Virus record (IMG/VR): IMGVR_UViG_3300020172_006270 | Coordinates: 1-64,000 of that record | Length of the DNA: 64,000 nt | Strand: one strand, 5' to 3' | Part shown: one piece after another, positions 28,133 to 63,999 of the stretch | How positions within the stretch are numbered: the first letter of the stretch is position 1 | Layout of the letters: each line of letters opens with the position of its first letter | Notes under the pieces: model-generated | Seen by the model: the letters and a program-made list of their open reading frames with translations, nothing else | Databases searched by the model: none | What the model was told of the DNA's origin: nothing | Position numbers and translations under genes: made by a program

Positions 28133-28701
28133 AAGAATTGATTTTGATCCGTCATGGCGAAAGCCAATATAACGCTTATCTGACGGATCACTTAGACAGC
28201 GAGCTTACGCCTAAAGGCATCGAACAAGCTCGTATAACAGGCAAGTTTCTCAAAGAGCAATTTGGTGATATTCACAATTTTGTGGGCATCACTTCTCCTT
28301 ATCTGCGATGCCTTCAAACGTCTCGCATTATTCGAGAAGAGACTGGCTTGGAATTTACCGTGAATCCCGGTCCACGGGAGATCATGATGAAATATCAGGC
28401 TGCTGAAGTAAAAAATCAACAAGAGAAATTTCCAGAGTTCATCTGGAATCACAATAATGATCTGTTTTTCAGCCAAGAGTCTGATACACAATTCATCGCT
28501 CGTATAAAAGCATTCCACGATAGTTTGAATCATGAAAAGCTCGTGGTGATTTCACACGGTACGCCAGTCAATACGATTTACGAGTTTGCTCTTGGGTTAA
28601 AAGCCAATGCAGATACAGTAAATTTTGTAAAGAACTGCTCTGTTAGCTATGTTCGCAATGGCGAAGGTATTTGGTTCGGAAAGGTAGTGTACGACGAGTA
28701 A
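28129..28701 (+). CDS. Histidine phosphatase (phosphoglycerate mutase family)
   Basis: LIRHGES, SPYLRCLQT, SHG. Confidence 0.92.
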   Translation: MKELILIRHGESQYNAYLTDHLDSELTPKGIEQARITGKFLKEQFGDIHNFVGITSPYLRCLQTSRIIREETGLEFTVNPGPREIMMKYQAAEVKNQQEKFPEFIWNHNNDLFFSQESDTQFIARIKAFHDSLNHEKLVVISHGTPVNTIYEFALGLKANADTVNFVKNCSVSYVRNGEGIWFGKVVYDE

Positions 28702-31085
28702 TGATTTTCAATAAGCGACCTCATGGCTTGTGGCATCTTCACAAAATCCCAAAGGTATTGCACCTTTATTGGGGCGGCGAGAATATGTCTTTTTTGAGGC
28801 ATCTTACCGTTGTTTCTTTTCGCCAATACAATCCTGATTGGCAAATCAAAATCCACACGCCGAAAAACATCTACAAAGGGAAGCCTACTTGGGATTCTCC
28901 TGAATACTCTCGTAGCTTCAAGATGTCAGGGAGATACCTGGAGCAACTGAAGAACTACGACGTTGAATTTGTCGAACATGATTTTGAATCATATGGTTTT
29001 CGGAGTGATGTTCCCGAAACCTTTAAGGCAGATTATCTGCGATACCGTCTCCTTTCTACAGAAGGCGGTGTTTGGTCAGACTTCGATATTTTGTATTTCC
29101 GACCTATGATAATGGCTGCATTCAACAATGCAGAGAATGCCGACGCCGACACTGGCCTATACATAGAAAATGGATTGCCACATATCTCTTTTCTATTTAG
29201 CAGTGCCAATAATCCTATGTATGCTAAGTTGGAAGCTCTGGCAAAAGATAAACTGGACCTATCAAGGTATCAGTCTATTGGTGCCGAGTTGTTTGCCCTG
29301 CCTGAGATGCAGGTCGATCAGTTGCCAATCAATTTGTGTAAGATTGACAAAAACTCTATTTACTATTTTGAGTGGCAGCGACTTACTGACATCTTCGTTA
29401 ACGAAGCCGTATATCCAGACGACGCCGTAGGCATTCATTGGTTTGCTGGTACTCCTATCTCTCAAGACTTTGATTCTCAAATTAGCATCGAGAATGTCTT
29501 TCGATTCAACAGTACATTGTGCAAAATTATCGTTAAAGCCTTGAATCTCGGTATTGATTATTCAGCAGATTATTTACCTCAATGGCATTTGACTCGCATC
29601 CCCAAAGTTCTTCATTTGTATTGGGGCGGGCAAAATCTGTCCTACCTCAGATACCTTACAGTTGTGTCTTTTAGACAACAAAATCCTGATTGGAAAATCA
29701 AGATTCATCGACCGTTTTTTCCATATGATGGCGAAATCACTTGGGGAGATTTACCTCATTCCCAAAAGGGATTGGCGACGGCAGGCGAGTATGCTTACAT
29801 TGAAAAATTAGAAGACTCCTATGTGGAGTTTGTTGGCCATGACTTTGAAAAATATGGCTTCCATAACAATATTCCAGAGACATACAAGGCTGATTATCTT
29901 CGCTACTTGTTGCTTTCAACTGAAGGTGGCGTGTGGTCAGACTTCGATATTCTGTACTTCCGGTCCATGAATTCTGTCGCTCTTAACAAGCGAGAGAACG
30001 GGAACGTAGACACCGGCATCTGCATCTTTGAAGATGGTTTGGTCCCTATTGGTTTTTTGTTTAGCTGCCCAGGCAACCCTGTGTATGCTAAATTAGAAAT
30101 TCTGGCGAAGCAAAGATTGAATTTGAAGAAGTATCAATCTATTGGTGCCGATCTATTCTTTCTTCCTGAAATGCGACTCAATAAGTTTCCAATCAATGTC
30201 GGGTTGATTTCTAAAGACACTGTATACGCATTGGATTGGAGTCGCACCAAAGACATTTTCATCAACAACGTGCCTCTTGAACAAGACACTATTGGCATCC
30301 ACTGGTACGCAGGAGATTTGATCGCTCAACAGTTTAATGATCGCATCACGCCGGACAATGTTGCCTATGGCAACAGCACGTTGTCTAATACGATCATGAA
30401 GCATCTTGACATCAAAAGAAAGCCCAAGTCAGTCTCAGTATTGATTCCATCTTTCAAACGAGCCGAACAACTGCGTTGGAATTTATTCTCATTGGCAAAC
30501 CAACAAACTGAGTTCGATTTTGAAGTTATCGTTTTGAACGATGGGTTCAACGACGACGAGACAGAACATATTTGTCGCTTGTACAACAAGCGTTTGCAGC
30601 TTCGATACCTGTTTACAGGGCAAAGAAACAACGGCACCCTAGCTAGGAAGCTCAAGCACCAAGGAGCCAAGGAAGCATTGGCTGTGGGTCTTGACCAAGC
30701 AGTTGGAGAAACCATAGTGATTGCAGGAGCAGAAATGTTTCTGCCTCAACGTGACACTTTGGATAAGTTGATTAAAGCGGCTAAAGCTGATTCAACTGCG
30801 GTAGCGGTGACTCACGTTGTTGACGATCTTGATGGTTCTTTATTGAAAGAACTGAATGACAATTTCGGCACTTTGGGAGACTTCAAAAAAGACAAACAAA
30901 TGGTTGTCTTTAGAGATGTGTCTGATGTTTTTGATAAGCCATATTTGATTGCTTATCAAAAAGACCTCGATAGATCAAAGGCACACATGGTACAAGTCGA
31001 AGCTGAAGCCATCCACTTGTACCACGGGCAGTCCAATGCTAAACGAAGTTATCATGTGATTGAGGCTCTGCAAGCAACTGATTGA
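28701..31085 (+). CDS. Multidomain glycosyltransferase: two GT32 (DXD) domains plus a GT2-like domain
   Basis: IPKVLHLYWGG...ADYLRY...EGGVWSDFD...IHW occurs twice; then SVLIPSFKR...LNDG. Confidence 0.85.
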   Translation: MIFNKRPHGLWHLHKIPKVLHLYWGGENMSFLRHLTVVSFRQYNPDWQIKIHTPKNIYKGKPTWDSPEYSRSFKMSGRYLEQLKNYDVEFVEHDFESYGFRSDVPETFKADYLRYRLLSTEGGVWSDFDILYFRPMIMAAFNNAENADADTGLYIENGLPHISFLFSSANNPMYAKLEALAKDKLDLSRYQSIGAELFALPEMQVDQLPINLCKIDKNSIYYFEWQRLTDIFVNEAVYPDDAVGIHWFAGTPISQDFDSQISIENVFRFNSTLCKIIVKALNLGIDYSADYLPQWHLTRIPKVLHLYWGGQNLSYLRYLTVVSFRQQNPDWKIKIHRPFFPYDGEITWGDLPHSQKGLATAGEYAYIEKLEDSYVEFVGHDFEKYGFHNNIPETYKADYLRYLLLSTEGGVWSDFDILYFRSMNSVALNKRENGNVDTGICIFEDGLVPIGFLFSCPGNPVYAKLEILAKQRLNLKKYQSIGADLFFLPEMRLNKFPINVGLISKDTVYALDWSRTKDIFINNVPLEQDTIGIHWYAGDLIAQQFNDRITPDNVAYGNSTLSNTIMKHLDIKRKPKSVSVLIPSFKRAEQLRWNLFSLANQQTEFDFEVIVLNDGFNDDETEHICRLYNKRLQLRYLFTGQRNNGTLARKLKHQGAKEALAVGLDQAVGETIVIAGAEMFLPQRDTLDKLIKAAKADSTAVAVTHVVDDLDGSLLKELNDNFGTLGDFKKDKQMVVFRDVSDVFDKPYLIAYQKDLDRSKAHMVQVEAEAIHLYHGQSNAKRSYHVIEALQATD

Positions 31086-32133
31086 TCGCCCTGTTCTTGT
31101 CGTTGAACATGCAACGAGTGCAATTTCTGGCGTCGAAGCCACCAAAGAATTCTTGTTTGTGTTGACTATCCCAAAGGTCTTTGAAGCTCATCTCTTTGAT
31201 GCTGCCGATCTGACCTTTTTTGTTGTAGGCATTCACACAGCATGTGTAGACATGCTGATCTCCACCAATGTATGTTGTGAAACTCATATAGCCACATCTT
31301 TGGTAGTCAGGCGTGCCTTGTTCTAGGTCAGCATATCGAGAGTTAAAGTTGTTGAACACTCTGAATTTATCATCGTTCAAATAGGAGATGGTTTCTATCT
31401 GTTCTACTATTTCATCATGTATTCCATCATAGAATCGTTCTTCGTCGTTTTGAAACACAGCAGATAGCCTTACGTTGTCAACGCCCCAGGCTTTGAACTG
31501 CTTCATGGCAATCGCTATTTCTTTGTAGTTTTCTTTTGTAACCACAAAGCCTATACCGACAGTAGCACGCCGATTGGGAATTGATGTAAGATACCGGACG
31601 TTCTTCTCGACAATGCCAAATTCTTGTTTAGGCACATTTCTGATGCCCGAATAAGTCTCAGGTGTTCCAGCATCAACAGAGATTCTGGTCCAGGTGGCTT
31701 TGGCTATGATGTCGGCCCGCTTCTGATTTAATAGAAGACCATTGCTGACAAGAGCTAGATCAATGTTCTTTGAAAGAATCATTTCACATAGTTCATTGAA
31801 GTTAGGGTGGAGCGTCGGTTCACCACCGCCAGTAATCTGAATTGCTCGCACGCCCATTTTTGCGCAGTCTTCTACTACTTCTTGTAGTTTAGGCCACGGG
31901 ATCATTCGTCTGGGGTTGTTGTTTACCTTGCCGTTATCGTCAATAATCTTGAATAGCTCGTTGCTGCTATACCCACTCATGCGGTACGCACAAAAGCTGC
32001 AATCTTGGTTGCAGTAATCAGACACGATCAGTTGAACGTGAACAGGATAGGGCTGCTTGTTTTCACGCAGTTGGACTAATTGGTTCAGGTGCAGGCTCGC
32101 TTTGTTGCTTGCGTATGGTTCCATTGATGGCAT
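31039..32133 (-). CDS. Radical SAM protein with SPASM/twitch domain
   Basis: CNQDCSFC, TGGGEPTLH, C-terminal CC...CTRC. Confidence 0.92.
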   Translation of the reverse strand: MPSMEPYASNKASLHLNQLVQLRENKQPYPVHVQLIVSDYCNQDCSFCAYRMSGYSSNELFKIIDDNGKVNNNPRRMIPWPKLQEVVEDCAKMGVRAIQITGGGEPTLHPNFNELCEMILSKNIDLALVSNGLLLNQKRADIIAKATWTRISVDAGTPETYSGIRNVPKQEFGIVEKNVRYLTSIPNRRATVGIGFVVTKENYKEIAIAMKQFKAWGVDNVRLSAVFQNDEERFYDGIHDEIVEQIETISYLNDDKFRVFNNFNSRYADLEQGTPDYQRCGYMSFTTYIGGDQHVYTCCVNAYNKKGQIGSIKEMSFKDLWDSQHKQEFFGGFDARNCTRCMFNDKNRAINQLLAEPQSHDNFV

Positions 32134-33121
32134 CCTTATATCGCTGTTCGTATTCTGGAACTAATTCTGGGTCTAGCGTCCATTTGTCGCCGACAACTGG
32201 ACACTTTATTTTATCTTTAAGAGAGTCGGGCATTACACCCCAAAGAATTACCACGTCACATTCTTTGAGAATCTCTTCTATTCTTTCGTCGTGTTCGCCG
32301 ATTGTGAAATCATGCCTACGTTCGTAGGTGATGTGGCGATAAGCGAAATCGTCGGTGACTTTGTTCATCATATCGACGAACTTCCAGCCTTCTGAAGTAT
32401 AGGTCTGGGAAATGTATGCAGCTTTATATTTGCAAACTTTCCATCGAGCCATTGCTCGTGCCACGGCTGATTGAGTCCAACCCTCTGGGTTATTGACTCT
32501 GTTGGTCAGGTTTTCAGCATGATTTCGCCATGTTCCCAATGTTTTAGGCACATGAACGAAATCACCTTGCTCGGACAAAAGCAGGTGCATGTAATAGTCT
32601 TCACATATTTCAGCACAATATTCTCCTGCTTTGTCCTTGGCTTCTTTTCTCCAAAGCCAACTTGGTCCCAGAAAACAAAAGTCTTGTAGAGCTTTTTTGT
32701 TGTACTTGGGATTTTTGTGTTCTTTGACGAAGTTAAAAACATCATCAATCTGAAGCCAATCGGCGTAAGCTAATGCTATTTCTGGCCCTGTTTTATCCAG
32801 AGCAGTCACAAGATACTCAATGGCGTCATCCATGACCCAGCTATCCCCACTAAGCCACGTTTGATATTTCCCAACGGCCTCCCTGAATCCTGTGTTTAAT
32901 GCCGTGCCAGTCCCAGAGTTTTTTGGCAATCGTATGCTTCGGAACCGTGGATCAAGTGTTTCAAAATACTTGATGATATTGGGCGTGCGGTCGGTCGAAC
33001 AATCATCTACGATAATGACCTCAAAATCTTCAAAGGTCTGGCATCGTATTGTGTCTAATGATTTTTCGAGGTATTTCTCTTCGTTCCACACTGGAACTAC
33101 GATGCTTACTTTTGGGGTCAT
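32063..33121 (-). CDS. Glycosyltransferase family 2
   Basis: SIVVPVWN, VDDCSTD, ALNTG, EDY. Confidence 0.92.
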   Translation of the reverse strand: MTPKVSIVVPVWNEEKYLEKSLDTIRCQTFEDFEVIIVDDCSTDRTPNIIKYFETLDPRFRSIRLPKNSGTGTALNTGFREAVGKYQTWLSGDSWVMDDAIEYLVTALDKTGPEIALAYADWLQIDDVFNFVKEHKNPKYNKKALQDFCFLGPSWLWRKEAKDKAGEYCAEICEDYYMHLLLSEQGDFVHVPKTLGTWRNHAENLTNRVNNPEGWTQSAVARAMARWKVCKYKAAYISQTYTSEGWKFVDMMNKVTDDFAYRHITYERRHDFTIGEHDERIEEILKECDVVILWGVMPDSLKDKIKCPVVGDKWTLDPELVPEYEQRYKDAINGTIRKQQSEPAPEPISPTA

Positions 33122-40844: not shown

Positions 40845-42323
40845 ATGCCAATAGTAATAACGAAACCAGTGCTTACAGCAACCTATTTAGTGGTTGATGA
40901 GAATGGCACTGTTATTTCGTCTCACCCTCAAAATATCGAGATCGAGTCAGTAGACGCCGATAGTTTTTTGCAAGCTCTAAGTGATTTGATGCTGGCAAAA
41001 GACGGCCTTGAACTCACCGCTAGTGAAGTTCATATGTTGATACGCACTGGCAATATGATTTCTCTCGGTAACGTCCAAGCTGCCACTCTCGGCGTTCAGA
41101 GCCAATATCAATTCCCCACAGCGGTTGGATCGACCGGGCAGGTTATTGGGTATCAAGGCACGAGCCAGTTGGCATGGGTTAACTCAGGTAGTGGCGCTCA
41201 AGGCTTTCAAGGAAACCAAGGCGCACAGGGCAATCAAGGCGCACAAGGAAATCAAGGCAATCAAGGAAACCAGGGGTTTGCAGGCTCGGTTGGTTCACAA
41301 GGTTTTCAGGGCAATCAAGGCAATCAGGGAAATCAAGGCACACAAGGCAACCAAGGGAACCAGGGATTCCAAGGTTCTGCCGGTACTGTCGGAAATCAAG
41401 GATTTCAAGGTAATCAAGGTAATCAGGGAAACCAAGGAACACTAGGAAACCAAGGCAACCAGGGATTACAAGGTTCTGCTGGTACGGTTGGTTCACAAGG
41501 ATTCCAGGGAAACCAAGGCAATCAGGGTAATCAAGGCACTCAAGGCAACCAAGGAAACCAAGGCAACCAAGGAAACCAAGGAACCGCTGGATCACAGGGT
41601 TTTCAAGGCAACCAAGGCGCACAAGGTAATCAGGGAAATCAGGGCAACCAAGGCACACAAGGTTTCCAAGGCAATCAGGGTAATCAAGGAACTGCTGGCG
41701 CACAAGGATTCCAGGGCAACCAAGGCAATCAGGGAAATCAGGGCAACCAAGGCACGCAAGGTTTCCAAGGCAATCAGGGCAACCAAGGAACTGCTGGCGC
41801 ACAAGGATTCCAGGGAGTTCAAGGCGCACAAGGAAATCAAGGATCACAAGGAAACCAGGGCATTTCTGGCTTAGGGTTTAGTGTTCCTTATACATTCAAC
41901 ACAAGCACAGTGATGTCGGCGGCTTCTGGAGAAGTTCGATTCAATAATGCTACGATTGCATCTATTACCAATATCGACATCTCAAGAACAGATCGCAATG
42001 GTGCTGGTCAGCAAGCTGTGTTGGATCGCATGTCATCTGGCACATTGTTTAGATTCTCTGCCGAAGCTAGTGCTACACAATACAACTTCTTCCAAGCCAA
42101 TAGCGTAACGAAGAATGCTCAAGATTATAACTTTGCTGTTGCATACTTGTCGAACAATGGATCGTTGTTCTCTAACTCAGCAAATATTGGTTTGGGAATT
42201 GCCATGATCGGCTACCAGGGCAATCAGGGCGCTCAAGGCTTCCAGGGCTACCAAGGCTTCCAGGGCGCTCAAGGCGCACAAGGACACCAGGGCAACCAAG
42301 GTAATCAAGGAGGAGGCATATAA
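40845..42323 (+). CDS. Collagen-like (G-X-Q)n fibre protein
   Basis: Long GNQ/GFQ/GAQ triplet run flanked by non-repeat domains. Confidence 0.88.
   Translation: MPIVITKPVLTATYLVVDENGTVISSHPQNIEIESVDADSFLQALSDLMLAKDGLELTASEVHMLIRTGNMISLGNVQAATLGVQSQYQFPTAVGSTGQVIGYQGTSQLAWVNSGSGAQGFQGNQGAQGNQGAQGNQGNQGNQGFAGSVGSQGFQGNQGNQGNQGTQGNQGNQGFQGSAGTVGNQGFQGNQGNQGNQGTLGNQGNQGLQGSAGTVGSQGFQGNQGNQGNQGTQGNQGNQGNQGNQGTAGSQGFQGNQGAQGNQGNQGNQGTQGFQGNQGNQGTAGAQGFQGNQGNQGNQGNQGTQGFQGNQGNQGTAGAQGFQGVQGAQGNQGSQGNQGISGLGFSVPYTFNTSTVMSAASGEVRFNNATIASITNIDISRTDRNGAGQQAVLDRMSSGTLFRFSAEASATQYNFFQANSVTKNAQDYNFAVAYLSNNGSLFSNSANIGLGIAMIGYQGNQGAQGFQGYQGFQGAQGAQGHQGNQGNQGGGI
41193..41861 (+). repeat. 9-bp degenerate collagen repeat (GGN-NNN-CAR)
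   Basis: Directly visible ggcaaccaa/ggaaatcaa units. Confidence 0.9.
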
Positions 42324-42324
42324 A

Positions 42325-43929
42325 TTGATAATCACGATTAAACCACAAATATCGGTTAGACTTCTTAAAGCAGATGGTGATACCATCCTGTCTGCTCATG
42401 ATAAATCTATCGACGTTGATTTGGTTGCCGATGATTTCATCTCTGCATTCAATACTTTGTTTGCCGACAAAGACGATTATCAACTTGTTGAAAGACCTAT
42501 TGTTTCGACCAATTTCTTATTGGTAAACAATAATGATGTTGTTGTGGCAACTCATCCACAAAGAATTGAACTTGGATTGAACATCGAGAGCTTTTTGGAT
42601 GGCATGAATAAGCTGATCGAAATTCGAGATGGCTTAGGCGGCGTGAATGCGTTGCTCACAATGGGCAATATCATTTCACTCGGCAATGTGCAGGCTGTAT
42701 CTCTTGGCATTCAAAGCCAGTATACGTTTCCAACGACAGCCGGAGTGACTGGACAAGTCATTGGCTATCAAGGCACATCTCAATTGGAATGGATCAGTGG
42801 TGCTACTGGTTTGCAAGGCCCTCTTGGTCTTCAGGGTCGGCAAGGAAATCAGGGGAATCAAGGCAACCAAGGCACGCAGGGCTTCCAGGGCGTTGGATCG
42901 CAAGGCTCGCAAGGCTTTCAAGGCAACCAAGGTCGTCAAGGAAACCAGGGCAACCAAGGCAATCAAGGCAACCAAGGATTTCAAGGTGTTGGATCGCAAG
43001 GCTCTCAAGGCGCACAGGGAAACCAAGGTCGTCAAGGAAACCAGGGGAATCAAGGCAACCAAGGTACACAAGGTTTTCAAGGGTCTGGCTCGCAAGGTCT
43101 GCAAGGCGCTCAGGGAAACCAAGGCAACCAAGGTGTACAAGGCAACCAAGGAACGCAAGGCAACCAAGGCCGACAAGGAAATCAGGGAGCCGGTCTGCAA
43201 GGCGCACAGGGAAACCAAGGTCGTCAAGGCAACCAAGGAAATCAAGGCAATAGAGGCTTACAGGGTCCGCAGGGCCGACAAGGAAATCAGGGAGCCGGTC
43301 TGCAAGGTCGGCAAGGCAACCAAGGAACACAAGGAAGACAAGGCAACCAAGGCAATCAAGGCTTTCAAGGTCGCCAAGGCAACCAAGGTTTAGGACTTCA
43401 GGGGCGACAAGGCTTTCAAGGCAACCAGGGGAATCAAGGCTTTCAAGGCAATCAGGGAGTTATCGCTCCTGGGTTTGTGTTGCCGCTCGCATTCAACACA
43501 AGCACCGTAATGTCGGCGGCATCTGGAGAGTTGAGATTCAACAACGCTACTGTTGCATCTGTGACCAATATTGACGTGTCGAGAACCGATAGAAATGGTT
43601 CTGGTCAACAGGGCGTGCTTGATAAATTTGGTAATGGCACTTTGTTTTTCTTTACGTCTGAAGCGGTAGCTTCTCAGTATAGTTTTTTCACTACTACTGG
43701 CGTGACGAAGAATGCAAGTGACTATAACTTCAGCGTTAGCTATATTTCTAATGCTGGTACTTTGTTTGCTAACTCACAAAATGTGAGTATGGGTGTTGCT
43801 CTGCTTGGATTCCAAGGAATCAGCTTGCAGGGCGCTCAAGGCTTCCAAGGACGCCAAGGCTCTCAAGGCTTCCAAGGACACCAAGGCAACCAAGGCGATC
43901 CTGGTGGTCCGGTTATTGAAGACCCTTAA
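42325..43929 (+). CDS. Collagen-like (G-X-Q)n fibre protein, paralogue of 40845..42323
   Basis: Shares GNxISLGNVQA...GQVIGYQGTSQL and FNTSTVMSAASGE...SRTDRNG. Confidence 0.88.
   Translation: MIITIKPQISVRLLKADGDTILSAHDKSIDVDLVADDFISAFNTLFADKDDYQLVERPIVSTNFLLVNNNDVVVATHPQRIELGLNIESFLDGMNKLIEIRDGLGGVNALLTMGNIISLGNVQAVSLGIQSQYTFPTTAGVTGQVIGYQGTSQLEWISGATGLQGPLGLQGRQGNQGNQGNQGTQGFQGVGSQGSQGFQGNQGRQGNQGNQGNQGNQGFQGVGSQGSQGAQGNQGRQGNQGNQGNQGTQGFQGSGSQGLQGAQGNQGNQGVQGNQGTQGNQGRQGNQGAGLQGAQGNQGRQGNQGNQGNRGLQGPQGRQGNQGAGLQGRQGNQGTQGRQGNQGNQGFQGRQGNQGLGLQGRQGFQGNQGNQGFQGNQGVIAPGFVLPLAFNTSTVMSAASGELRFNNATVASVTNIDVSRTDRNGSGQQGVLDKFGNGTLFFFTSEAVASQYSFFTTTGVTKNASDYNFSVSYISNAGTLFANSQNVSMGVALLGFQGISLQGAQGFQGRQGSQGFQGHQGNQGDPGGPVIEDP
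42808..43458 (+). repeat. 9-bp degenerate collagen repeat
   Basis: GNQ/GRQ/GLQ triplets. Confidence 0.9.
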
Positions 43930-44143: not shown

Positions 44144-44445
44144 AGTGATTTCACATAATCTTGGATTTTGAAGTAATCGCCGACGATACGTCTAATGCGT
44201 TCGTCGGCATCTTTGTAAAGGCGATTACGGCGACCCCGTTCTTCATCGCCTTGTTCTTGCACGAACTTCTCGAAGCCGCACAAATAGCACCACACCCAAT
44301 ATCGTTTGTTTCTCAGTTTTTCAATGACATAGCTGTGGTATGCGTCCCAACTGAGATTCCATTTCTTGAATAATTTGGAGTAGCGTTCCTCCATCATCTT
44401 GATTTGGTTCTCGTAAAACTCTGGCTCGTAATCAGGAGTATCCAT
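44140..44445 (-). CDS. Hypothetical protein
   Basis: Coupled to the helicase stop. Confidence 0.6.
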   Translation of the reverse strand: MDTPDYEPEFYENQIKMMEERYSKLFKKWNLSWDAYHSYVIEKLRNKRYWVWCYLCGFEKFVQEQGDEERGRRNRLYKDADERIRRIVGDYFKIQDYVKSL

Positions 44446-45893
44446 TAGAAATCAATTTCCTTAATTTTGACTTCGTGACCTTCCTCAGTCAGAATTTTAA
44501 TTCTTTTCTTTGAGTGATCCTGGAGATAATCGTTGATTTCAAACAGGAAGTCATAATAGTTCAAATCTTCTTTGTCATCAGCGGTACGAAGACCTCGACC
44601 CATTCTTTGAATAATCAAGTGGTCGGCCTGACCGCCAGCAGCGTTAATCAAATTATGAACAAATACGTTGATGCCGGTATTGAAAATTTGTTGCGTAGCA
44701 ATCGCTATACATTCTTTATCCTTTTGAAGTTGCTTCACAACACTCTTTCGGGTTGCCTGAGTATCTTTTCCCTGAACCCAGATACTTCCCGGCAGCAGGT
44801 TATGTAGGGCATCTCCGTGAGCAATTCGATCCACCAAGATCAAAGTTCTGCCAGTCTGCTTCTTGGCCAATCTAGTTACAATTTTATGGAAGTGATAGCT
44901 TTCAGCAATACCTCTGGTTACGGCATCAATATAGATGTCGTGAGGAATCATTGGTTCTCTGATCGGATAAAACGTACAATTCGAGTTAGAAAGAATGCCT
45001 CTGCCTTGAAGCTCGGCAGTGGTCAATACGCCTGTCGCCGCACTCTTTACCTTGAGGATAGGGCCAAAGAATCCTCGAACGTGGAACTTCTGCACGTTGT
45101 CTTTGCCGCCGAATTTGAATGGTGTGGCACTAACGGCGACTCGCACATCGCAGGCTTTTAGACGACGATATACAGCTTTTGGCAAAGCACTCATCATATC
45201 GTGAATTTCGTCTACGATAAGCACTTTGATCTTAGGCAAAAGTTTTTCAATTTTGGCAACACTTTGAACGCTGGCAACCGTGATAATATTTGGATTGGCC
45301 GCACCGCCCCAAAGAGTGCCTACATTATTGAATCCCCAATTTTTGATTTCATCGTAGTTTTGTTGAGCCAACGTAACCCGGTTTTGCAAAACAAGAGTAG
45401 GTGTCCCAGGCGGGATAGATTTTAGAATGCCCAACATGATGAATGTTTTACCAGCACTCGTCGGAGCATAAATGACTCCACGACGATGCTTGAGGACTTG
45501 ATTGACCAATTCGACTTGGTAATCATGTAATATAACTGGCTTCATTGGGTCGCCGCCCAATGTTGTAGCTGGTAGCCATTGATTCAAAAAGTTTTGGTCG
45601 ATTGAATCAAAAAGGAAAGGAGTCTTTTTTCGGTTATCTTCTACAGTGAAGTCAACTTTGAAATGTCTGAGAACAGCGGTGACTTCAGGAAGTAAACCTG
45701 TGAGAAACTTACCTGTTTCGAGAGCGAAGAATTGGATATAACCGTCCCACTTCCGCATTTTGTATGCACGGTTATGGAAGTAGTTCCGGTCCCTGAATCT
45801 CAGACGATCCCAAATCTCGTGCTTCGTCTGTAGGTCTTCCGACAGGAAATACGAGTAATCGTTCTCTATTCTCAATATGTTCGTGTTGCTCAT
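44445..45893 (-). CDS. uvsW: SF2 DNA helicase, UvsW-like
   Basis: DYQ, APTSAGKT, DEIH, SATP, TGIN, QRMGRGLR. Confidence 0.88.
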   Translation of the reverse strand: MSNTNILRIENDYSYFLSEDLQTKHEIWDRLRFRDRNYFHNRAYKMRKWDGYIQFFALETGKFLTGLLPEVTAVLRHFKVDFTVEDNRKKTPFLFDSIDQNFLNQWLPATTLGGDPMKPVILHDYQVELVNQVLKHRRGVIYAPTSAGKTFIMLGILKSIPPGTPTLVLQNRVTLAQQNYDEIKNWGFNNVGTLWGGAANPNIITVASVQSVAKIEKLLPKIKVLIVDEIHDMMSALPKAVYRRLKACDVRVAVSATPFKFGGKDNVQKFHVRGFFGPILKVKSAATGVLTTAELQGRGILSNSNCTFYPIREPMIPHDIYIDAVTRGIAESYHFHKIVTRLAKKQTGRTLILVDRIAHGDALHNLLPGSIWVQGKDTQATRKSVVKQLQKDKECIAIATQQIFNTGINVFVHNLINAAGGQADHLIIQRMGRGLRTADDKEDLNYYDFLFEINDYLQDHSKKRIKILTEEGHEVKIKEIDF

Positions 45894-46018
45894 TTTTTGT
45901 GTCTATCGCCTGAGTTTGTATCGTCTTCCTGGCACGGGTTATTCTACCAGATTTACTGCCTCTTGTACCACTCCGTTTTGACCCACAACACATGGCATTT
46001 CCTCACTTAAAATAACTT

Positions 46019-46330
46019 ATGTCAAGTATATATGCCCCTGAAATCGTGTTGAACATACAATCACATCAAATTGTTCCACAGCAGCGTAAGCTAAAAGCTG
46101 TATGGTCAGTAGAGGCAGCACAAGATTTACAGTCTTGGAATACACCAGAACAAGAATTGGCTGATTTGATGGCGCAAGAAATTGCGAACGAGATCGACAA
46201 GGAAATCCTTGAAGACCTCGCTCGCAATGCACGGGAAGCCGCTGAAGAGGAATTACGGTTTAAGAACCGGAAAAAGAAAATCCTGCCAAGGTCTATCAAT
46301 GACGATTGGCAGGTTTCAAGGTTTGATTAA
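46019..46330 (+). CDS. Mini-protein containing a T4 gp23-like major capsid segment
   Basis: RKLKAVWSVEAAQDL...ELADLMAQEIANEIDKEIL resembles gp23 RQLKAAYSIELAQDL...ELSGILATEIMLEINREV (recalled). Confidence 0.7.
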   Translation: MSSIYAPEIVLNIQSHQIVPQQRKLKAVWSVEAAQDLQSWNTPEQELADLMAQEIANEIDKEILEDLARNAREAAEEELRFKNRKKKILPRSINDDWQVSRFD

Positions 46331-46929
46331 GCTGGCAATAGTTTGTGTCGCACGAGTTTGACGACCATCAGGGCGTCCTCAAGTGCAGTATGGGCCACTT
46401 CTCCGGCCATTCCTGCTCGTTCCAGACACGTTGCCGAGTCTGGCAGAGTCTTATCCCCAGGCTGGTAATACAAGATCGCTGGGTCAATAACACGATGCAG
46501 GATCGTAATGTCGCCCCAATGCTTCTTGAGCTTCTTGTTCAAGAATGGCAGATCGAACATGGCGGCATTCTTCCCAGCCACAGTAATCTTGACTCGACCA
46601 CTCTTAGGGTCTTCAGGAACGCCGTTTTGAGTCAAGAAATTCTTGAATGCGAATGGCAAGTCAAGAATGTGCATAAATCGGTCGCCGAATTCGTTCTCTT
46701 CAATACGCTTCTTTTGGGCGTCGGCGATTTTCTTGAATATTTGAGGGTGCATACCCAGGGCATATGGCTCGCCAGTATATGTTGGCTGGGTGAAATGGGT
46801 CTGAAACTTAGGGAGCTTTTCAAGTGGCTGTGGATTAGACAGATCGTCAATCACGGCTGCAAACTGGACAATATCGCAGGTTTTTGGATTGAGTCCCGTG
46901 GTTTCAATGTCAATTGAGCAGTAAAGCAT
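46327..46929 (-). CDS. DEDDh 3'-5' exonuclease
   Basis: DIETTG, NAAMFD, ID, HTALED. Confidence 0.9.
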   Translation of the reverse strand: MLYCSIDIETTGLNPKTCDIVQFAAVIDDLSNPQPLEKLPKFQTHFTQPTYTGEPYALGMHPQIFKKIADAQKKRIEENEFGDRFMHILDLPFAFKNFLTQNGVPEDPKSGRVKITVAGKNAAMFDLPFLNKKLKKHWGDITILHRVIDPAILYYQPGDKTLPDSATCLERAGMAGEVAHTALEDALMVVKLVRHKLLPA

Positions 46930-54227: not shown

Positions 54228-55592
54228 ATGAACTTAGACAAAATATTGATTGGTATGCACGAAGAATCCTGCCGTTTGCACGCAGAGGGAAGAGATTCAG
54301 AGGCTTTATTTACCTGCGAACAACTGGCAGTACAATCTCTCAATACATTGGGGCTTGCTTATTGCGGTTATTTGCCCAATTACGACAAGGCAATAAATTG
54401 CTTTTTCGATGCTCTTAAAATCGAGCCAAGTAACTGGTTGTTGTGGTCAAACATTTGTCACGTTCGCAGTCTCCAAGAGCGTCATAAAGAAGCCCTGTCT
54501 GCCGCCATTCAGTCAATCAAGTTTTCAGACGGAATCGCCTTTGATCCTTACTACAACGCTGGCGTGACTTTAACTGCTCTCGGCAGATGCAAAGAAGCCG
54601 TCGAGATGTACCGAGCCGCCTTGCAGATCAGCCCGGAACACAGCCAAATCAATTACAATCTGGGACTGTGCTTGTTGAGAATTGGCGAATGGAAAGACGG
54701 TTGGGAGAAATACGAATACAGGTTCAAGACCAGTGAATTGACGGGTCGATTCAAAGATAGATTCATTCAAGATCAGTGGGACGGCAGGAAGTTCAAAAAG
54801 AAAAGCCTTGCCGTCTATAGCGAGCAAGGCTTGGGCGACTTCATATTTTTCGCTAGATTTTTACCAATGGTAAAAGCCCTCGGTGGTAAGGTGATATGTG
54901 AAGTACAAGAACCATTGAAGGATGTTATTGGAAAGAATCTCAAAATTGATGAATTGGTTTCCCGTCCCAATAATACTGAGTGGCCCGCACCGCCAGATTC
55001 AGATTACGCCGTTTCGATTTCTAGTCTTCCAAGAATTTTGAAAATCGACTCTTTGGACAAGGTGCCGAATCGTCCGTATATTGCCGCCCCCAATAAACCA
55101 AGGCCACGGGGTTTCTCGAACAAGAAGTTCAACATTGGCTTGTGCTGGGCGGGTAACTCAGATCATCAACGAGATTACACCCGATCAATGTTTTTGAATC
55201 ACTTCAAGCCGCTCGCTGACAATCCAAAAGTTCAACTTTTTGGTTTGGTGAAGGGCGTCCGAAATCAAAGGAAGTGGCCGGAAGGAGTGGTTGATTTGAA
55301 CTATGGCATTGATGATTTTCCAATGGTCAATTTAGAAAATCAAATCAATGGATTTGGCGACTTGGCTCATTACATCAATCATCTGGACTTAGTGCTGACT
55401 GTAGACACAGGATTAGCACACTTGGCAGGAGCGATGGGCAAGCCTGTATGGGTTCTGTTGGGCAAAGAAACAGATTGGCGATGGGGAGACGATGCAACAA
55501 CCTCAGCTTGGTATCCCAGCATGAGGTTGTTTCGTCGCCAAGATACTTGGGAAAATCTTGTTTCCGAAGTGATTACTCAACTGCCGTCATAG
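54228..55592 (+). CDS. TPR-repeat GT9-like glycosyltransferase
   Basis: TPRs, then EQGLGDFIFFARF, WAGN, TVDTGLAHLAGAMG, WYPSMRLFR. Confidence 0.9.
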   Translation: MNLDKILIGMHEESCRLHAEGRDSEALFTCEQLAVQSLNTLGLAYCGYLPNYDKAINCFFDALKIEPSNWLLWSNICHVRSLQERHKEALSAAIQSIKFSDGIAFDPYYNAGVTLTALGRCKEAVEMYRAALQISPEHSQINYNLGLCLLRIGEWKDGWEKYEYRFKTSELTGRFKDRFIQDQWDGRKFKKKSLAVYSEQGLGDFIFFARFLPMVKALGGKVICEVQEPLKDVIGKNLKIDELVSRPNNTEWPAPPDSDYAVSISSLPRILKIDSLDKVPNRPYIAAPNKPRPRGFSNKKFNIGLCWAGNSDHQRDYTRSMFLNHFKPLADNPKVQLFGLVKGVRNQRKWPEGVVDLNYGIDDFPMVNLENQINGFGDLAHYINHLDLVLTVDTGLAHLAGAMGKPVWVLLGKETDWRWGDDATTSAWYPSMRLFRRQDTWENLVSEVITQLPS

Positions 55593-58954: not shown

Positions 58955-59328
58955 CCAATGTTACCTCCATACAACTCGAACCAGCGTTCCTTAATCATCG
59001 CATCGGCGATTGGACTGCGTGCATTGAGGTCTTCTTCTTTCTCAATCTTCACGCCATCTCGTCGCCCGCCCCAGCCCGTAGCTGATTTCATCTTGGCCGT
59101 CAGTGGTTCTTTGCTGTAGGCCGACAAAGGTGGGCAGATTTCTTCTTTGGCACCGTTCTCGCTACGGCCATTTTCGTAAATCACACCATCCTTGATGAAG
59201 CGATGGTGTTTATGTTTACATTTAGGGCAGACGATTTCCACGCCGATGGTGAGAGCCATATTCAGTCTTACTCGAAAATAGCCCGAACACTCACCGCAGT
59301 AAAACTCCTGCCATACTTTGTTATCCAT
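58951..59328 (-). CDS. Zinc-ribbon protein
   Basis: CGEC...CPKC. Confidence 0.65.
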   Translation of the reverse strand: MDNKVWQEFYCGECSGYFRVRLNMALTIGVEIVCPKCKHKHHRFIKDGVIYENGRSENGAKEEICPPLSAYSKEPLTAKMKSATGWGGRRDGVKIEKEEDLNARSPIADAMIKERWFELYGGNIG

Positions 59329-60719
59329 TAGTCCCTCGGCCTCAATAGGGGGAATGCAATTACGTCTCGAATGGTAGCCTGATTGGTCAGGATAGCCACA
59401 AGACGGTCGATGCCAAGTCCAAGACCGCCAGCCGGAGGCATACCTGTCTTGATGGCATCTACGAAGTCTTGATCCATAACGTGACCGTCCTTGGCTTGCT
59501 TTTGGAAATTCTCCAATTGAATATCCGGGTCGTTCAACTCGGTATATCCTGGCGCAATTTCCATGCCGCCAATGACCAGTTCAAATGTCTCTGCGTATCC
59601 TTGGTTTCCATCATACTTGCCGAATGGTCGTGCCAATGGCACTGCACTAGCAGGCATGTGCATAACGAAGGTTGGCTGAATCAGCGTTGATTCAATCGTG
59701 TCTTCGTATACCTGGAAGCGATATTCGGGCGAGCCGTCTCCGACCACCAGTTCTTGCAAGGATACTCGCTTGAATGGTGGAGTGAAGTTTAGCAGATGTT
59801 CCTTGTAGGGAATATCCATAAGGCGACCGTGAATCTTTTCCACTTGGTTGACGATAAGAGCCTCAACCAGCTTCATCATCGTCTCGTAGTTGCCAAAGGC
59901 TTGGTAAGCCTCCATAGACGTGAATTCAGGGTTGTGGCGAGGGCTGATGCCTTCATTGCGGAAGTTCTTGCCGATCTCGAAGACCTTGTTCATGCCGCCA
60001 ATGAGCAACTTCTTCAGATATAGCTCAGGGGCAATACGAAGGAACATGCCAATGTCGAGGGCATTGTGGTGCGTCATGAATGGCTTGGCGATAGCACCAC
60101 CAGCCGACGCTTGCAGAATCGGAGTTTCGACTTCATCAAAGCCACGATCATACATCATCGTGCGAATATCACGAATGATATTGGCTCGCTGCCGAAACAC
60201 CTTCATGGTGTCCGGGTTGGTCCACATATCAACGTGGCGAAGACGATACTTGAGTTCCGGGTCATTTAGCCCGTGAACCTTGTCTGGTGGTGGCGTGAGA
60301 GCCTTAGATACAATACGAAACGTATCGGCCCAAATAGTGATCTCGCCACGCTGAGTAGCGGCCAGACGACCCCGGACAGCGACAATATCGCCCAGGTCCA
60401 ATGCTTCGTATTGTGGCCAATCCCATCGTTGAGCTACAGGACCAGCAAACTTAGACTGGTCGATGGCAACTTGGATTTGCCCATCCTCACTTGTGATGGT
60501 GAGGAAGGACAACTTTCCATGACCCCGCTTGAGCGCACACCGACCAACAATAACAAACTCCGGGCCGTCTTCCTTGGTGAAAGAGGCATCAAAGCTGTCA
60601 CGAACAATATCAATGTTCGTTGGTGCTGGATCAATAATGGACATATCGAAAGGCCGGTGTCCCTTGGCCTTTAGATCGTCTAACTTGGCTCGGCGTTCAT
60701 CAACAGGGTTGTTGCTCAT
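59328..60719 (-). CDS. lysS: Lysyl-tRNA synthetase (class II)
   Basis: OB fold, EVETPIL, LRIAPELYLK, FRNEG, HNPEFT, GMPPAGGLGLGIDRL. Confidence 0.97.
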   Translation of the reverse strand: MSNNPVDERRAKLDDLKAKGHRPFDMSIIDPAPTNIDIVRDSFDASFTKEDGPEFVIVGRCALKRGHGKLSFLTITSEDGQIQVAIDQSKFAGPVAQRWDWPQYEALDLGDIVAVRGRLAATQRGEITIWADTFRIVSKALTPPPDKVHGLNDPELKYRLRHVDMWTNPDTMKVFRQRANIIRDIRTMMYDRGFDEVETPILQASAGGAIAKPFMTHHNALDIGMFLRIAPELYLKKLLIGGMNKVFEIGKNFRNEGISPRHNPEFTSMEAYQAFGNYETMMKLVEALIVNQVEKIHGRLMDIPYKEHLLNFTPPFKRVSLQELVVGDGSPEYRFQVYEDTIESTLIQPTFVMHMPASAVPLARPFGKYDGNQGYAETFELVIGGMEIAPGYTELNDPDIQLENFQKQAKDGHVMDQDFVDAIKTGMPPAGGLGLGIDRLVAILTNQATIRDVIAFPLLRPRD

Positions 60720-62871: not shown

Positions 62872-63999
62872 TTACTCGTTTGTCATCATGCCCATCTTGG
62901 GGAGGAATACTTCCAAAGGCAAGGTTTCCTGATCGCCCGAAGTTGATCTCATTTGCTTGAGAGTCACAGTCCTTGCGGTCTTTTCTTTTTCTCCCAAGAT
63001 GACCATATACGGTACTTTTTTCTCATACCCGATGGCAATCTTTTGTTGTAGCGTCCGATTCGAGTGATCGCATTCACACCGAATCCCTTGAGCGAGCAAG
63101 GCTTCTTTGACTTCGTTGGCGTAATCAGCAACCTTGTCGCTGATTGGTGCAATAGTAACACCGACCGGAGCCAACCACATTGGTAAATTCCCATCAGTGT
63201 GTTCTAACAGCACACCGATGAAACGCTCGAAGCTGCCATATATCGCTCGGTGAATAACAATCGGAGTTTGTTCTTTGTCTTCCTTGTCGGTGTAAGTGCA
63301 ACCGAATCGCTGCGGCAATTGGAAGTCTAACTGGATAGTAGCAGTTTGCCATTCACGACCCAGGGAGTCAGTTACAATGAAGTCGATTTTCGGTCCATAA
63401 AAAGCACCGTCTTTATGAGCCACGTCAAACTTCAAATTATTTTCACACAAGGCGTCTTCAAGGCTTGCTTCAGCATTATCCCAAGTCAATATATCGCCCA
63501 TGAAGTTATCGGGACGAGTGCTGAGTACGGATCGGAACTTCATTCCGAACCAGCCGTATACTCTGCCGATCATAATGAGAATTCGCTTGATCTCGCTTTG
63601 CAGGTTGTCCGGCGAAACGAAAATATGGGCATCATCTTGGCAGAACGCACGACAACGAGTAAGTCCACCCAAGGCACCGGAAACCTCGTTTCGATGCAAT
63701 GGGCCATACTCGGCGAACCGCACGGGCAAATCTCGATAGCTCCACTGCTTTGAGCGGAATATCTCCATATGCCCAGGGCAGTTCATTGGCTTCAAACAAC
63801 AATCTTCATGTTCTTCGTCTTGCTTCTCGCCAGTTGGCTTATCGCTGACGAAGAACATATTTTTCGCATAGTGGTCCAGATGCCCGCTGGTTGCATAAAG
63901 TTCGGACTTCCAGACGAGTGGGGTCCGAACTTCTTGGCAACCATTGGCTTCATTGAGTTGGCGAATGCGATTCAGCAATGATTGATAAAGGACAACTCC
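62872..63999 (-). CDS. thrS: Threonyl-tRNA synthetase, 5'-partial (runs off the window)
   Basis: SGHLDHY, KPMNCPGH, HRNE, QDDAHIF, GAFYGPKID, HRAIYGSFERF; frame is open to the window end. Confidence 0.97.
   Translation of the reverse strand, partial: GVVLYQSLLNRIRQLNEANGCQEVRTPLVWKSELYATSGHLDHYAKNMFFVSDKPTGEKQDEEHEDCCLKPMNCPGHMEIFRSKQWSYRDLPVRFAEYGPLHRNEVSGALGGLTRCRAFCQDDAHIFVSPDNLQSEIKRILIMIGRVYGWFGMKFRSVLSTRPDNFMGDILTWDNAEASLEDALCENNLKFDVAHKDGAFYGPKIDFIVTDSLGREWQTATIQLDFQLPQRFGCTYTDKEDKEQTPIVIHRAIYGSFERFIGVLLEHTDGNLPMWLAPVGVTIAPISDKVADYANEVKEALLAQGIRCECDHSNRTLQQKIAIGYEKKVPYMVILGEKEKTARTVTLKQMRSTSGDQETLPLEVFLPKMGMMTNE

Follow-up and report, generated by a model that had tools for sequence, protein, structure and literature searches.

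A short protein of a huge freshwater phage joins a fragment of the T4-type capsid protein to a conserved terminal tag

A 103-codon open reading frame of a huge freshwater phage is a real, conserved gene, whose product carries a 65-residue piece of the phage's T4-type major capsid protein joined to a short end-peptide. The same end-peptide, hereafter the tag, is found on other protein fragments in related huge freshwater phages; we could not find such a gene family described. The window analysed here is a stretch of 64,000 nucleotides, the first 64 kb of a 223-kb virus record (G000), itself only about 46% complete, from a freshwater metagenome. The record belongs to a huge phage with T4-type head genes: a protease, a scaffold and a 478-aa capsid protein.

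The gene runs from an ATG to a TAA codon, head-to-head with a helicase gene and tail-to-tail with an exonuclease gene. Residues 7-80 of the product match positions 132-199 of 376 of the Pfam profile Gp23 (PF07068; E 1.5e-15, 58 bits against a cut-off of 24.4) and the major head protein family phrog_138 (E 3.5e-15), far beyond chance; a missing gp23 match had been named in advance as grounds for abandoning the idea. Against solved structures, residues 13-68 align to T4 gp23 254-311, which comprises the RxLKAxWS strand, the short acidic helix and the spine helix. The protein is a homologous fragment and not a capsid protein: it has no N-arm, I domain, A domain or P-loop, and its AF2 model is a single long helix, which cannot form an HK97 fold alone. 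Whether it enters capsomers or the virion shell was not assayed, as no virion proteome or structure exists for this uncultured phage. The true capsid gene is intact, at 185-187 kb of the record (profile positions 1-347, aligned to T4 gp23 85-479), so the ORF is not an exon of a split gene.

What the initial annotation observed, a free-standing gp23 fragment with its own start and stop between helicase and exonuclease genes on the opposite strand, is confirmed. Its remark that the HG(M/L)D loop is shortened holds for this copy and its two nearest relatives, which have a 2-residue gap, while other homologues keep the full loop. Its statement that no other gp23 remnants flank the gene is true locally, although the record holds the intact capsid gene and a second free-standing fragment 131 kb away. 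The different charged tail that it noted is real and is the most conserved part of the protein.

Table 1. Positions of the capsid-fragment gene, its parts and other loci considered (window numbering unless a record or locus name is given; G000 is the 223-kb record, L names are loci of the record or of related phages).
Position	Strand	Feature	Supporting observations
46019..46330	+	Gene of the 103-aa tagged fragment (type A, fragment A), stop codon included	ORF listing and translation
46037..46228	+	gp23-derived core, residues 7-70 (I-domain linker 2, P-domain strand, short acidic helix, spine helix)	56% identical to the phage's own capsid protein
46085..46126	+	Basic strand plus short acidic helix, residues 23-36, RKLKAVWSVEAAQD	R23, K26, A27, W29 and D36 invariant in 16 homologues; equivalent to T4 gp23 264-277, with head-length sites A268 and A275
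46148..46228	+	Spine-helix equivalent, residues 44-70	AF2 helix 23-87, pLDDT 79-93 over residues 41-80; equivalent to T4 gp23 about 289-311, with gp31-bypass sites G292, V306 and V307
46259..46285	+	Lys/Arg-rich linker, residues 81-89, FKNRKKKIL	Nearly invariant in type A
46286..46327	+	Terminal tag, residues 90-103, PRSINDDWQVSRFD	P90, R91, I93, W97, V99, S100, R101, F102 and D103 invariant
45894..46018	.	125-bp spacer between the divergent helicase and fragment genes	About 91% column identity across 4 genomes
44445..45893	-	Helicase, conserved left neighbour	ResIII/DEAD/Helicase_C, phrog_16; same neighbour in L004, L005 and L006; 482/480-aa ORF conserved
46327..46929	-	3'-5' exonuclease, conserved right neighbour	RNase_T, phrog_192; stop overlaps the fragment's stop by 4 nt; synteny conserved
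45772-45993	-	73-aa ORF called by gene finders in relatives	Overlaps the conserved helicase frame
G000 177667-177981 = L003:1426-1734	-	Second free-standing gp23 fragment, 103 aa (type B, fragment B)	C-terminal P-domain sheet and P-loop; same terminal tag
G000 179508-179885 = L189:5512-5886	-	125-aa DUF6794-like protein	Starts with the tag motif, followed by a helical domain
L173:5357-6299 and L197:5730-6303		Tandem arrays of two or three small genes, each ending in the tag	N-terminal parts include a gp23 N-terminal fragment, a collagen-like GPxG run and unknown sequences
L180:1339-1638 and L181:1438-1944		Capsid-derived pieces of a tag-less relative (LR756511.1, 595-kb uncultured phage)	
L198:1583-2179		Stand-alone Peptidase_C39-like gene	
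28671-33121		Glycosyltransferase region with an embedded radical SAM/SPASM enzyme	Enzyme at 31039-32133 (-)
40845-43929		Two adjacent large ORFs with long collagen-type G-x-y repeats	Pfam Collagen E 7e-42 for the first
54228-55592		TPR repeats joined to a family-9 glycosyltransferase domain	
59328-60719 and 62872-63978		Two class II aminoacyl-tRNA synthetases	D/K/N type; G/H/P/S/T type with an anticodon-binding domain

A word-index search restricted to similar lengths found ten further proteins of 99-106 aa at 64-86% identity, on contigs up to 462 kb, and later searches added five more. In total at least 15 homologues of 79-109 aa, at 54-86% identity, keep size, start and stop, and the order helicase, fragment, exonuclease is the same in every contig long enough to show it (contigs of 38-462 kb). 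Neutral decay was the other outcome that had been set against the reading beforehand, and it is not observed: pairwise Nei-Gojobori dN/dS among four DNA copies is 0.12-0.29, with dS up to about 1.7. In the last 26 codons, against the most distant DNA-sampled relative (L005), synonymous sites are saturated while the residues are kept. The reading frame itself is fixed by the gp23 homology, because the mirror antisense frame gives a similar ratio. We are nearly certain that this is a functional gene, and equally so that it belongs to the tag family. There are nevertheless no expression data: the sequence occurs only in DNA runs from freshwater and sediment and in no RNA run, the reads themselves not having been aligned to it, and searches around the gene revealed no obvious ribosome-binding site, no recognisable promoter, T4 late promoter or terminator, no Rfam family and no stable RNA fold. 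The 125-bp spacer upstream is unusually conserved (about 91-95% identical in four genomes), although its flanking genes have dS of about 0.9-1.3, and it gives no Rfam hit and no stable fold either. Gene finders call a 71-73-aa basic ORF here on the minus strand, whose low dS (0.09) and dN/dS of 0.5 look non-coding or doubly constrained; it is probably not a separate gene.

The sequence after the capsid-like part, FKNRKKKILP-RSIxDDWQVSRFD, constitutes the tag with its Lys/Arg-rich run. A family search of the whole record found fragment B, which matches Gp23 profile positions 289-354 (T4 gp23 435-479) and ends in HRSITDPWEVSQFDG. It has about 40 short relatives, most of the full-coverage ones carrying the same ending, and it is always followed by a 161-163-aa gene with an AbiEi_4-type winged helix (G000, L007, L190, L198 and L199). 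A profile of the last 32 residues only, run against 1.84 billion representative proteins, returned 20 proteins at E<1e-3. Nineteen of them are 55-156 aa long with the motif at the very end, and the 460-aa exception (P0067) is a repetitive protein that we take for a spurious match. The type-A cluster representative (P0004, 83% identical to the window protein) scores E 8.5e-13. Besides types A and B, the hits include fragments of the N-terminal conserved gp23 region (type N, profile positions 3-61), a fragment of the PrkA C-terminal domain (PrkA 118-214, E 8e-11) and several unknown N-terminal parts. Two loci show tandem arrays of tagged genes, one with a collagen-like GPxG fragment. A word-index search with the tail region returned only type A.

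The motif also occurs at the N-terminus (M-T-RKITDPWEVSKD) of a 125-aa protein at 179.5 kb of the record, where it is invariant in six homologues. The gene lies 1.5-2 kb from the fragment B gene in four lineages, and one 462-kb contig carries type A, type B and this protein. Its match to DUF6794 (PF20594) is weak and below the curated cut-off (17 against 27 bits), with DUF6794 models among weak fold hits; a Foldseek search with its model gave no hit with E<1. DUF6794 has no known function, and no paper in the literature searched mentions it.

From 56 sequences, the window protein included, the tag reads as about four K/R in ten residues (the average for C-terminal tags), then W/Y/H/P, then R-S-I-T-D-(P/D)-W-E-V-S; R, I and S are almost invariant, Ser and Arg being kept in 54 of 56 sequences. 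The record has exactly three tag proteins, and their tags use different codons (for example Ser as TCA, TCT and AGC), so they are kept by selection and not by recent copying. The tag is low-confidence coil in both AF2 models. A six-frame hit had seemed to run from the capsid match through the tail, but profile-profile comparison finds no match of the core tag to the capsid alignment, and a gp23 origin of the tag is rejected. We conclude that it is a short linear docking or recognition motif kept by selection on the protein.

Types A and B correspond to T4 gp23 254-311 and 435-479 by alignment to solved structures, and type N to about 90-136 through this phage's own capsid protein. In T4, capsomers are held together near the quasi-threefold axes by P-loops and by charge contacts between a short acidic P-domain helix and basic P-domain strands (PMC9546572). 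Head-length mutations fall in three clusters, A66D/A94V/G97S, A268V/A275T/D285V/D287V,N and T457A/R460C/G461S, and the gp31-bypass mutations are G292S/V306I/V307I in the spine helix and A455V in the P-domain sheet (PMC9546572). Each fragment type thus covers one head-length cluster, and types A and B also cover the chaperonin-bypass sites. In ungapped register, which is our inference, Ala27 and Ala34 of the window protein correspond to T4 A268 and A275, while the 2-residue gap falls at D285/D287. The overlap may, however, only reflect that these are the three best-conserved gp23 segments; the N-terminal one is described as the most conserved region and the site of the Gol peptide (PMC3014915).

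The fragment genes evolve much faster than the true capsid gene. Against the 462-kb-type relative, amino-acid identity and dN/dS are 98% and 0.05 for the capsid protein, 95% and 0.025 for the exonuclease, 89% and 0.066 for the helicase, 70% and 0.24 for fragment A, 72% and 0.23 for the DUF6794-like protein, and 54% and 0.39 for fragment B. Fragment B has also lost part of its capsid-like segment in that relative while keeping a perfect tag. Compared with the phage's real capsid protein, as had been suggested at the outset, fragment A is no closer (56%) than to other T4-like capsid proteins (50-58%). A tree of fragments and capsid proteins was dropped, because all capsid proteins sampled are more than 80% alike and equidistant from the fragments. 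What fragment A retains is the set conserved across the gp23 family: R23, K26, A27, W29, D36, E54, I55, E58, I59 and D60.

We tentatively propose that the protein is a capsid-interface mimic. Its gp23-derived part would occupy, on gp23-type capsid protein (the phage's own or that of a co-infecting T4-like phage) or on factors that recognise gp23, the site normally filled by this element, which in T4 forms charge contacts between capsomers and packs on the P-domain sheet. The tag would be a docking peptide coupling whatever is bound to one shared, unidentified partner. A piece of an interface that keeps the interface residues is most simply explained as still making, or competing for, the contacts of that interface, and the same logic covers the PrkA and collagen-like members, which also derive from self-associating proteins. 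Fast evolution, loss or erosion in sister lineages and a variable repertoire point to an accessory, conflict-type role rather than a core assembly factor. Our data establish homology, selection, family membership, the modular tag and the positional overlap with T4 functional sites, whereas binding, target and consequence are inferred. No result shows binding to capsid protein or to anything else; the one complex prediction, of fragment A with fragment B, scored 0.00 and gave no verdict, which is not evidence either way on whether the two rebuild a P-domain, and the fragment was not modelled with the capsid protein. Since the fragment does not track its own capsid protein, a specific self-partner is not indicated, and a broad inhibitor would also threaten the phage's own assembly. 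The intact tag on the eroded fragment B indicates that the tag, not the mimic, may carry the main function.

The interpretation given by the initial annotation is thus supported in part. A free-standing capsid mimic maintained by selection is borne out, but which of its three proposed roles holds (sensor decoy, assembly modulator or inhibitor of competing phages) is not decided by our results, binding, timing and phenotype not having been examined. It missed that the tail is a shared modular tag, which changes the question from one odd capsid piece to a bait-plus-tag system. The faster evolution and patchy repertoire favour its conflict-type ideas over a core morphogenesis role, while the overlap with T4 head-length and chaperonin-bypass sites keeps the assembly idea alive.

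Two alternatives seem unlikely to a similar degree. In the first, the fragment is a decoy that presents a conserved gp23 surface to a host sensor of the CapRel, Lit or PifA kind, soaking it up or misdirecting it, with the tag blocking activation or sending the sensor to a disposal route. Fast evolution, erosion in a sister lineage and a variable repertoire are typical of counter-defence genes; only gp23-wide conserved residues are retained; and type N covers the most conserved part of the first quarter of gp23, where the T4 Gol peptide that triggers Lit lies (PMC3014915). On the other hand, known capsid sensors are activated, not blocked, by the capsid piece they bind, so a free piece should trigger them, and the PrkA-type and collagen-type fragments do not fit such a decoy. 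PADLOC and NCBIfam models gave nothing for the three tag proteins, and there are no matches to defence or anti-defence models. The host and its sensors are unknown, with sensor binding not measured here: among 185,579 species genomes we found no A-type gene, only binned phage capsid genes.

In the second, the fragment caps or chaperones the phage's own capsid protein at the inter-capsomer interface, delaying polymerisation or tuning capsomer angles and so the size of a very large head, and the tag ties it to scaffold, portal or chaperonin. The coincidence with the T4 head-length and gp31-bypass sites, the gap at the equivalent of D285/D287 and the position of fragment B, 8 kb from the head genes, speak for it. 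No GroES/gp31-type gene was found in the 223 kb of the record, although this absence is weak given its incompleteness. However, a partner of an invariant protein should not drift as the fragments do between two lineages with 98% identical capsid proteins, gene A sits among replication genes, and the fragment does not track its own capsid protein.

It is somewhat less likely still that the tag is the working part, a targeting or docking signal (for loading into the head, delivery to a chaperonin or protease, or modification), and that the capsid piece is mainly a carrier, captured by recombination, that is stable or suitably located. The tag is more conserved than the capsid-like part, survives its erosion, works at either end of proteins and on unrelated N-terminal parts, sometimes in tandem arrays, and its conserved Ser and Arg would suit a recognition or modification site. 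Yet in type A the capsid-derived residues are themselves under purifying selection (core dN/dS 0.16-0.42) and stay gp23-like, and the recurrent choice of the three most conserved gp23 segments is hard to explain by random capture. No partner or enzyme is linked by synteny: the TPR-glycosyltransferase gene and the radical SAM/SPASM gene, a possible tag-modifying enzyme with only generic sub-threshold matches to peptide and cofactor maturases, are not adjacent, and the latter is a lead only. The resemblance of the tag (I-T-D-P-W-E-V) to the GroEL 'strongly binding peptide', which reportedly contains T-T-P-W-G-F, is an unverified lead and not evidence.

A non-functional remnant of capsid gene duplication or recombination, for which speak only the short length, the lack of an obvious ribosome-binding site and the missing expression data, is contradicted by the conserved borders, the selection, the synteny and the non-gp23 tail that other genes share in different codons; the divergence of the homologues excludes that they are assembly duplicates of one sequence.

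A broader possibility, which we consider unlikely but not excluded, is that huge T4-related phages run a modular system in which short pieces of self-assembling proteins (three interface segments of the capsid protein, a collagen-like fibre, PrkA) serve as homotypic baits, while one common terminal peptide hands whatever they capture to a single machine (chaperonin, protease, modifying enzyme or the DUF6794-like protein), either to set the geometry of giant capsids or to sabotage co-infecting T4-like phages.

The nearest known concepts each share one feature only. T4 gp23 and its paralogue gp24 share the sequence homology, but the window protein covers only 68 of 376 profile positions and adds a non-gp23 tag. 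The Gol peptide, a 29-residue gp23 segment that binds EF-Tu and activates the Lit protease (PMC3014915), is a precedent for a short, highly conserved gp23 segment with biological activity of its own, and type N covers the corresponding region; Gol is not separately encoded, fragment A comes from a different region, and a link to EF-Tu or Lit was not examined. MicroProteins or dominant-negative fragments, such as plant LITTLE ZIPPER and animal Id proteins, are likewise small, separately encoded proteins derived from the interaction element of a larger self-associating protein, as fragment A derives from the gp23 element making inter-capsomer charge contacts in T4. Here the setting is a phage, the universal terminal tag has no counterpart in microProteins, and interference through non-productive complexes with the parent protein has not been demonstrated. 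Terminal targeting peptides of protein shells (the T4 capsid-targeting sequence of internal proteins, encapsulin cargo-loading peptides) are also short disordered peptides shared by unrelated small proteins, usable at either terminus and set off by a linker, and the tag has these properties. We could confirm no sequence resemblance, there is no evidence of loading or cleavage, neither having been assayed, and the cargo would be pieces of the shell protein itself; Asp before Pro in most tags makes an L/I-x-E type cleavage site unlikely, an inference from T4.

To our knowledge, neither the tag nor free-standing tagged capsid fragments have been described: we found no paper and no Pfam, PHROG, NCBIfam or PADLOC model for them. 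DNA and protein searches of GenBank phages returned no free-standing homologue of fragment A or B, only full-length capsid genes, and no homologue of the DUF6794-like protein; in IMG/VR only 3-4 contigs carry the family, and ESM Atlas features gave nothing above noise. If our reading is right, phages have a general way of making specific binders, by cutting out a piece of the target's own interface and adding a common handle. The fragments single out the three gp23 regions that control head length in T4, two of which also control chaperonin dependence, in phages whose heads must hold 0.3-0.6 Mb genomes; how very large capsids set their size is an open question, for which this gives concrete genes to test. 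For phage-host and phage-phage conflict, the family would be the first capsid-derived interference or decoy family, and the tag a ready-made probe for its partner. Even if the function turns out to be modest, the tag defines a new, easily recognised gene family for annotating huge-phage genomes.

Capsid-derived small proteins may be wider than the tag family. The tag-less relative LR756511.1 carries a gp23 C-terminal piece fused to an N-terminal CxxC...CxxC zinc-ribbon-like segment, as well as a very diverged 168-aa A-domain-like piece (E 0.008). In another relative, a Peptidase_C39-like gene lies two genes downstream of a C-terminal tagged fragment; it is not present at the same place in this genome. 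The window itself encodes collagen-like proteins, a related phage having a tagged collagen-like mini-gene, at least eight glycosyltransferase genes, and aminoacyl-tRNA synthetases typical of huge phages.
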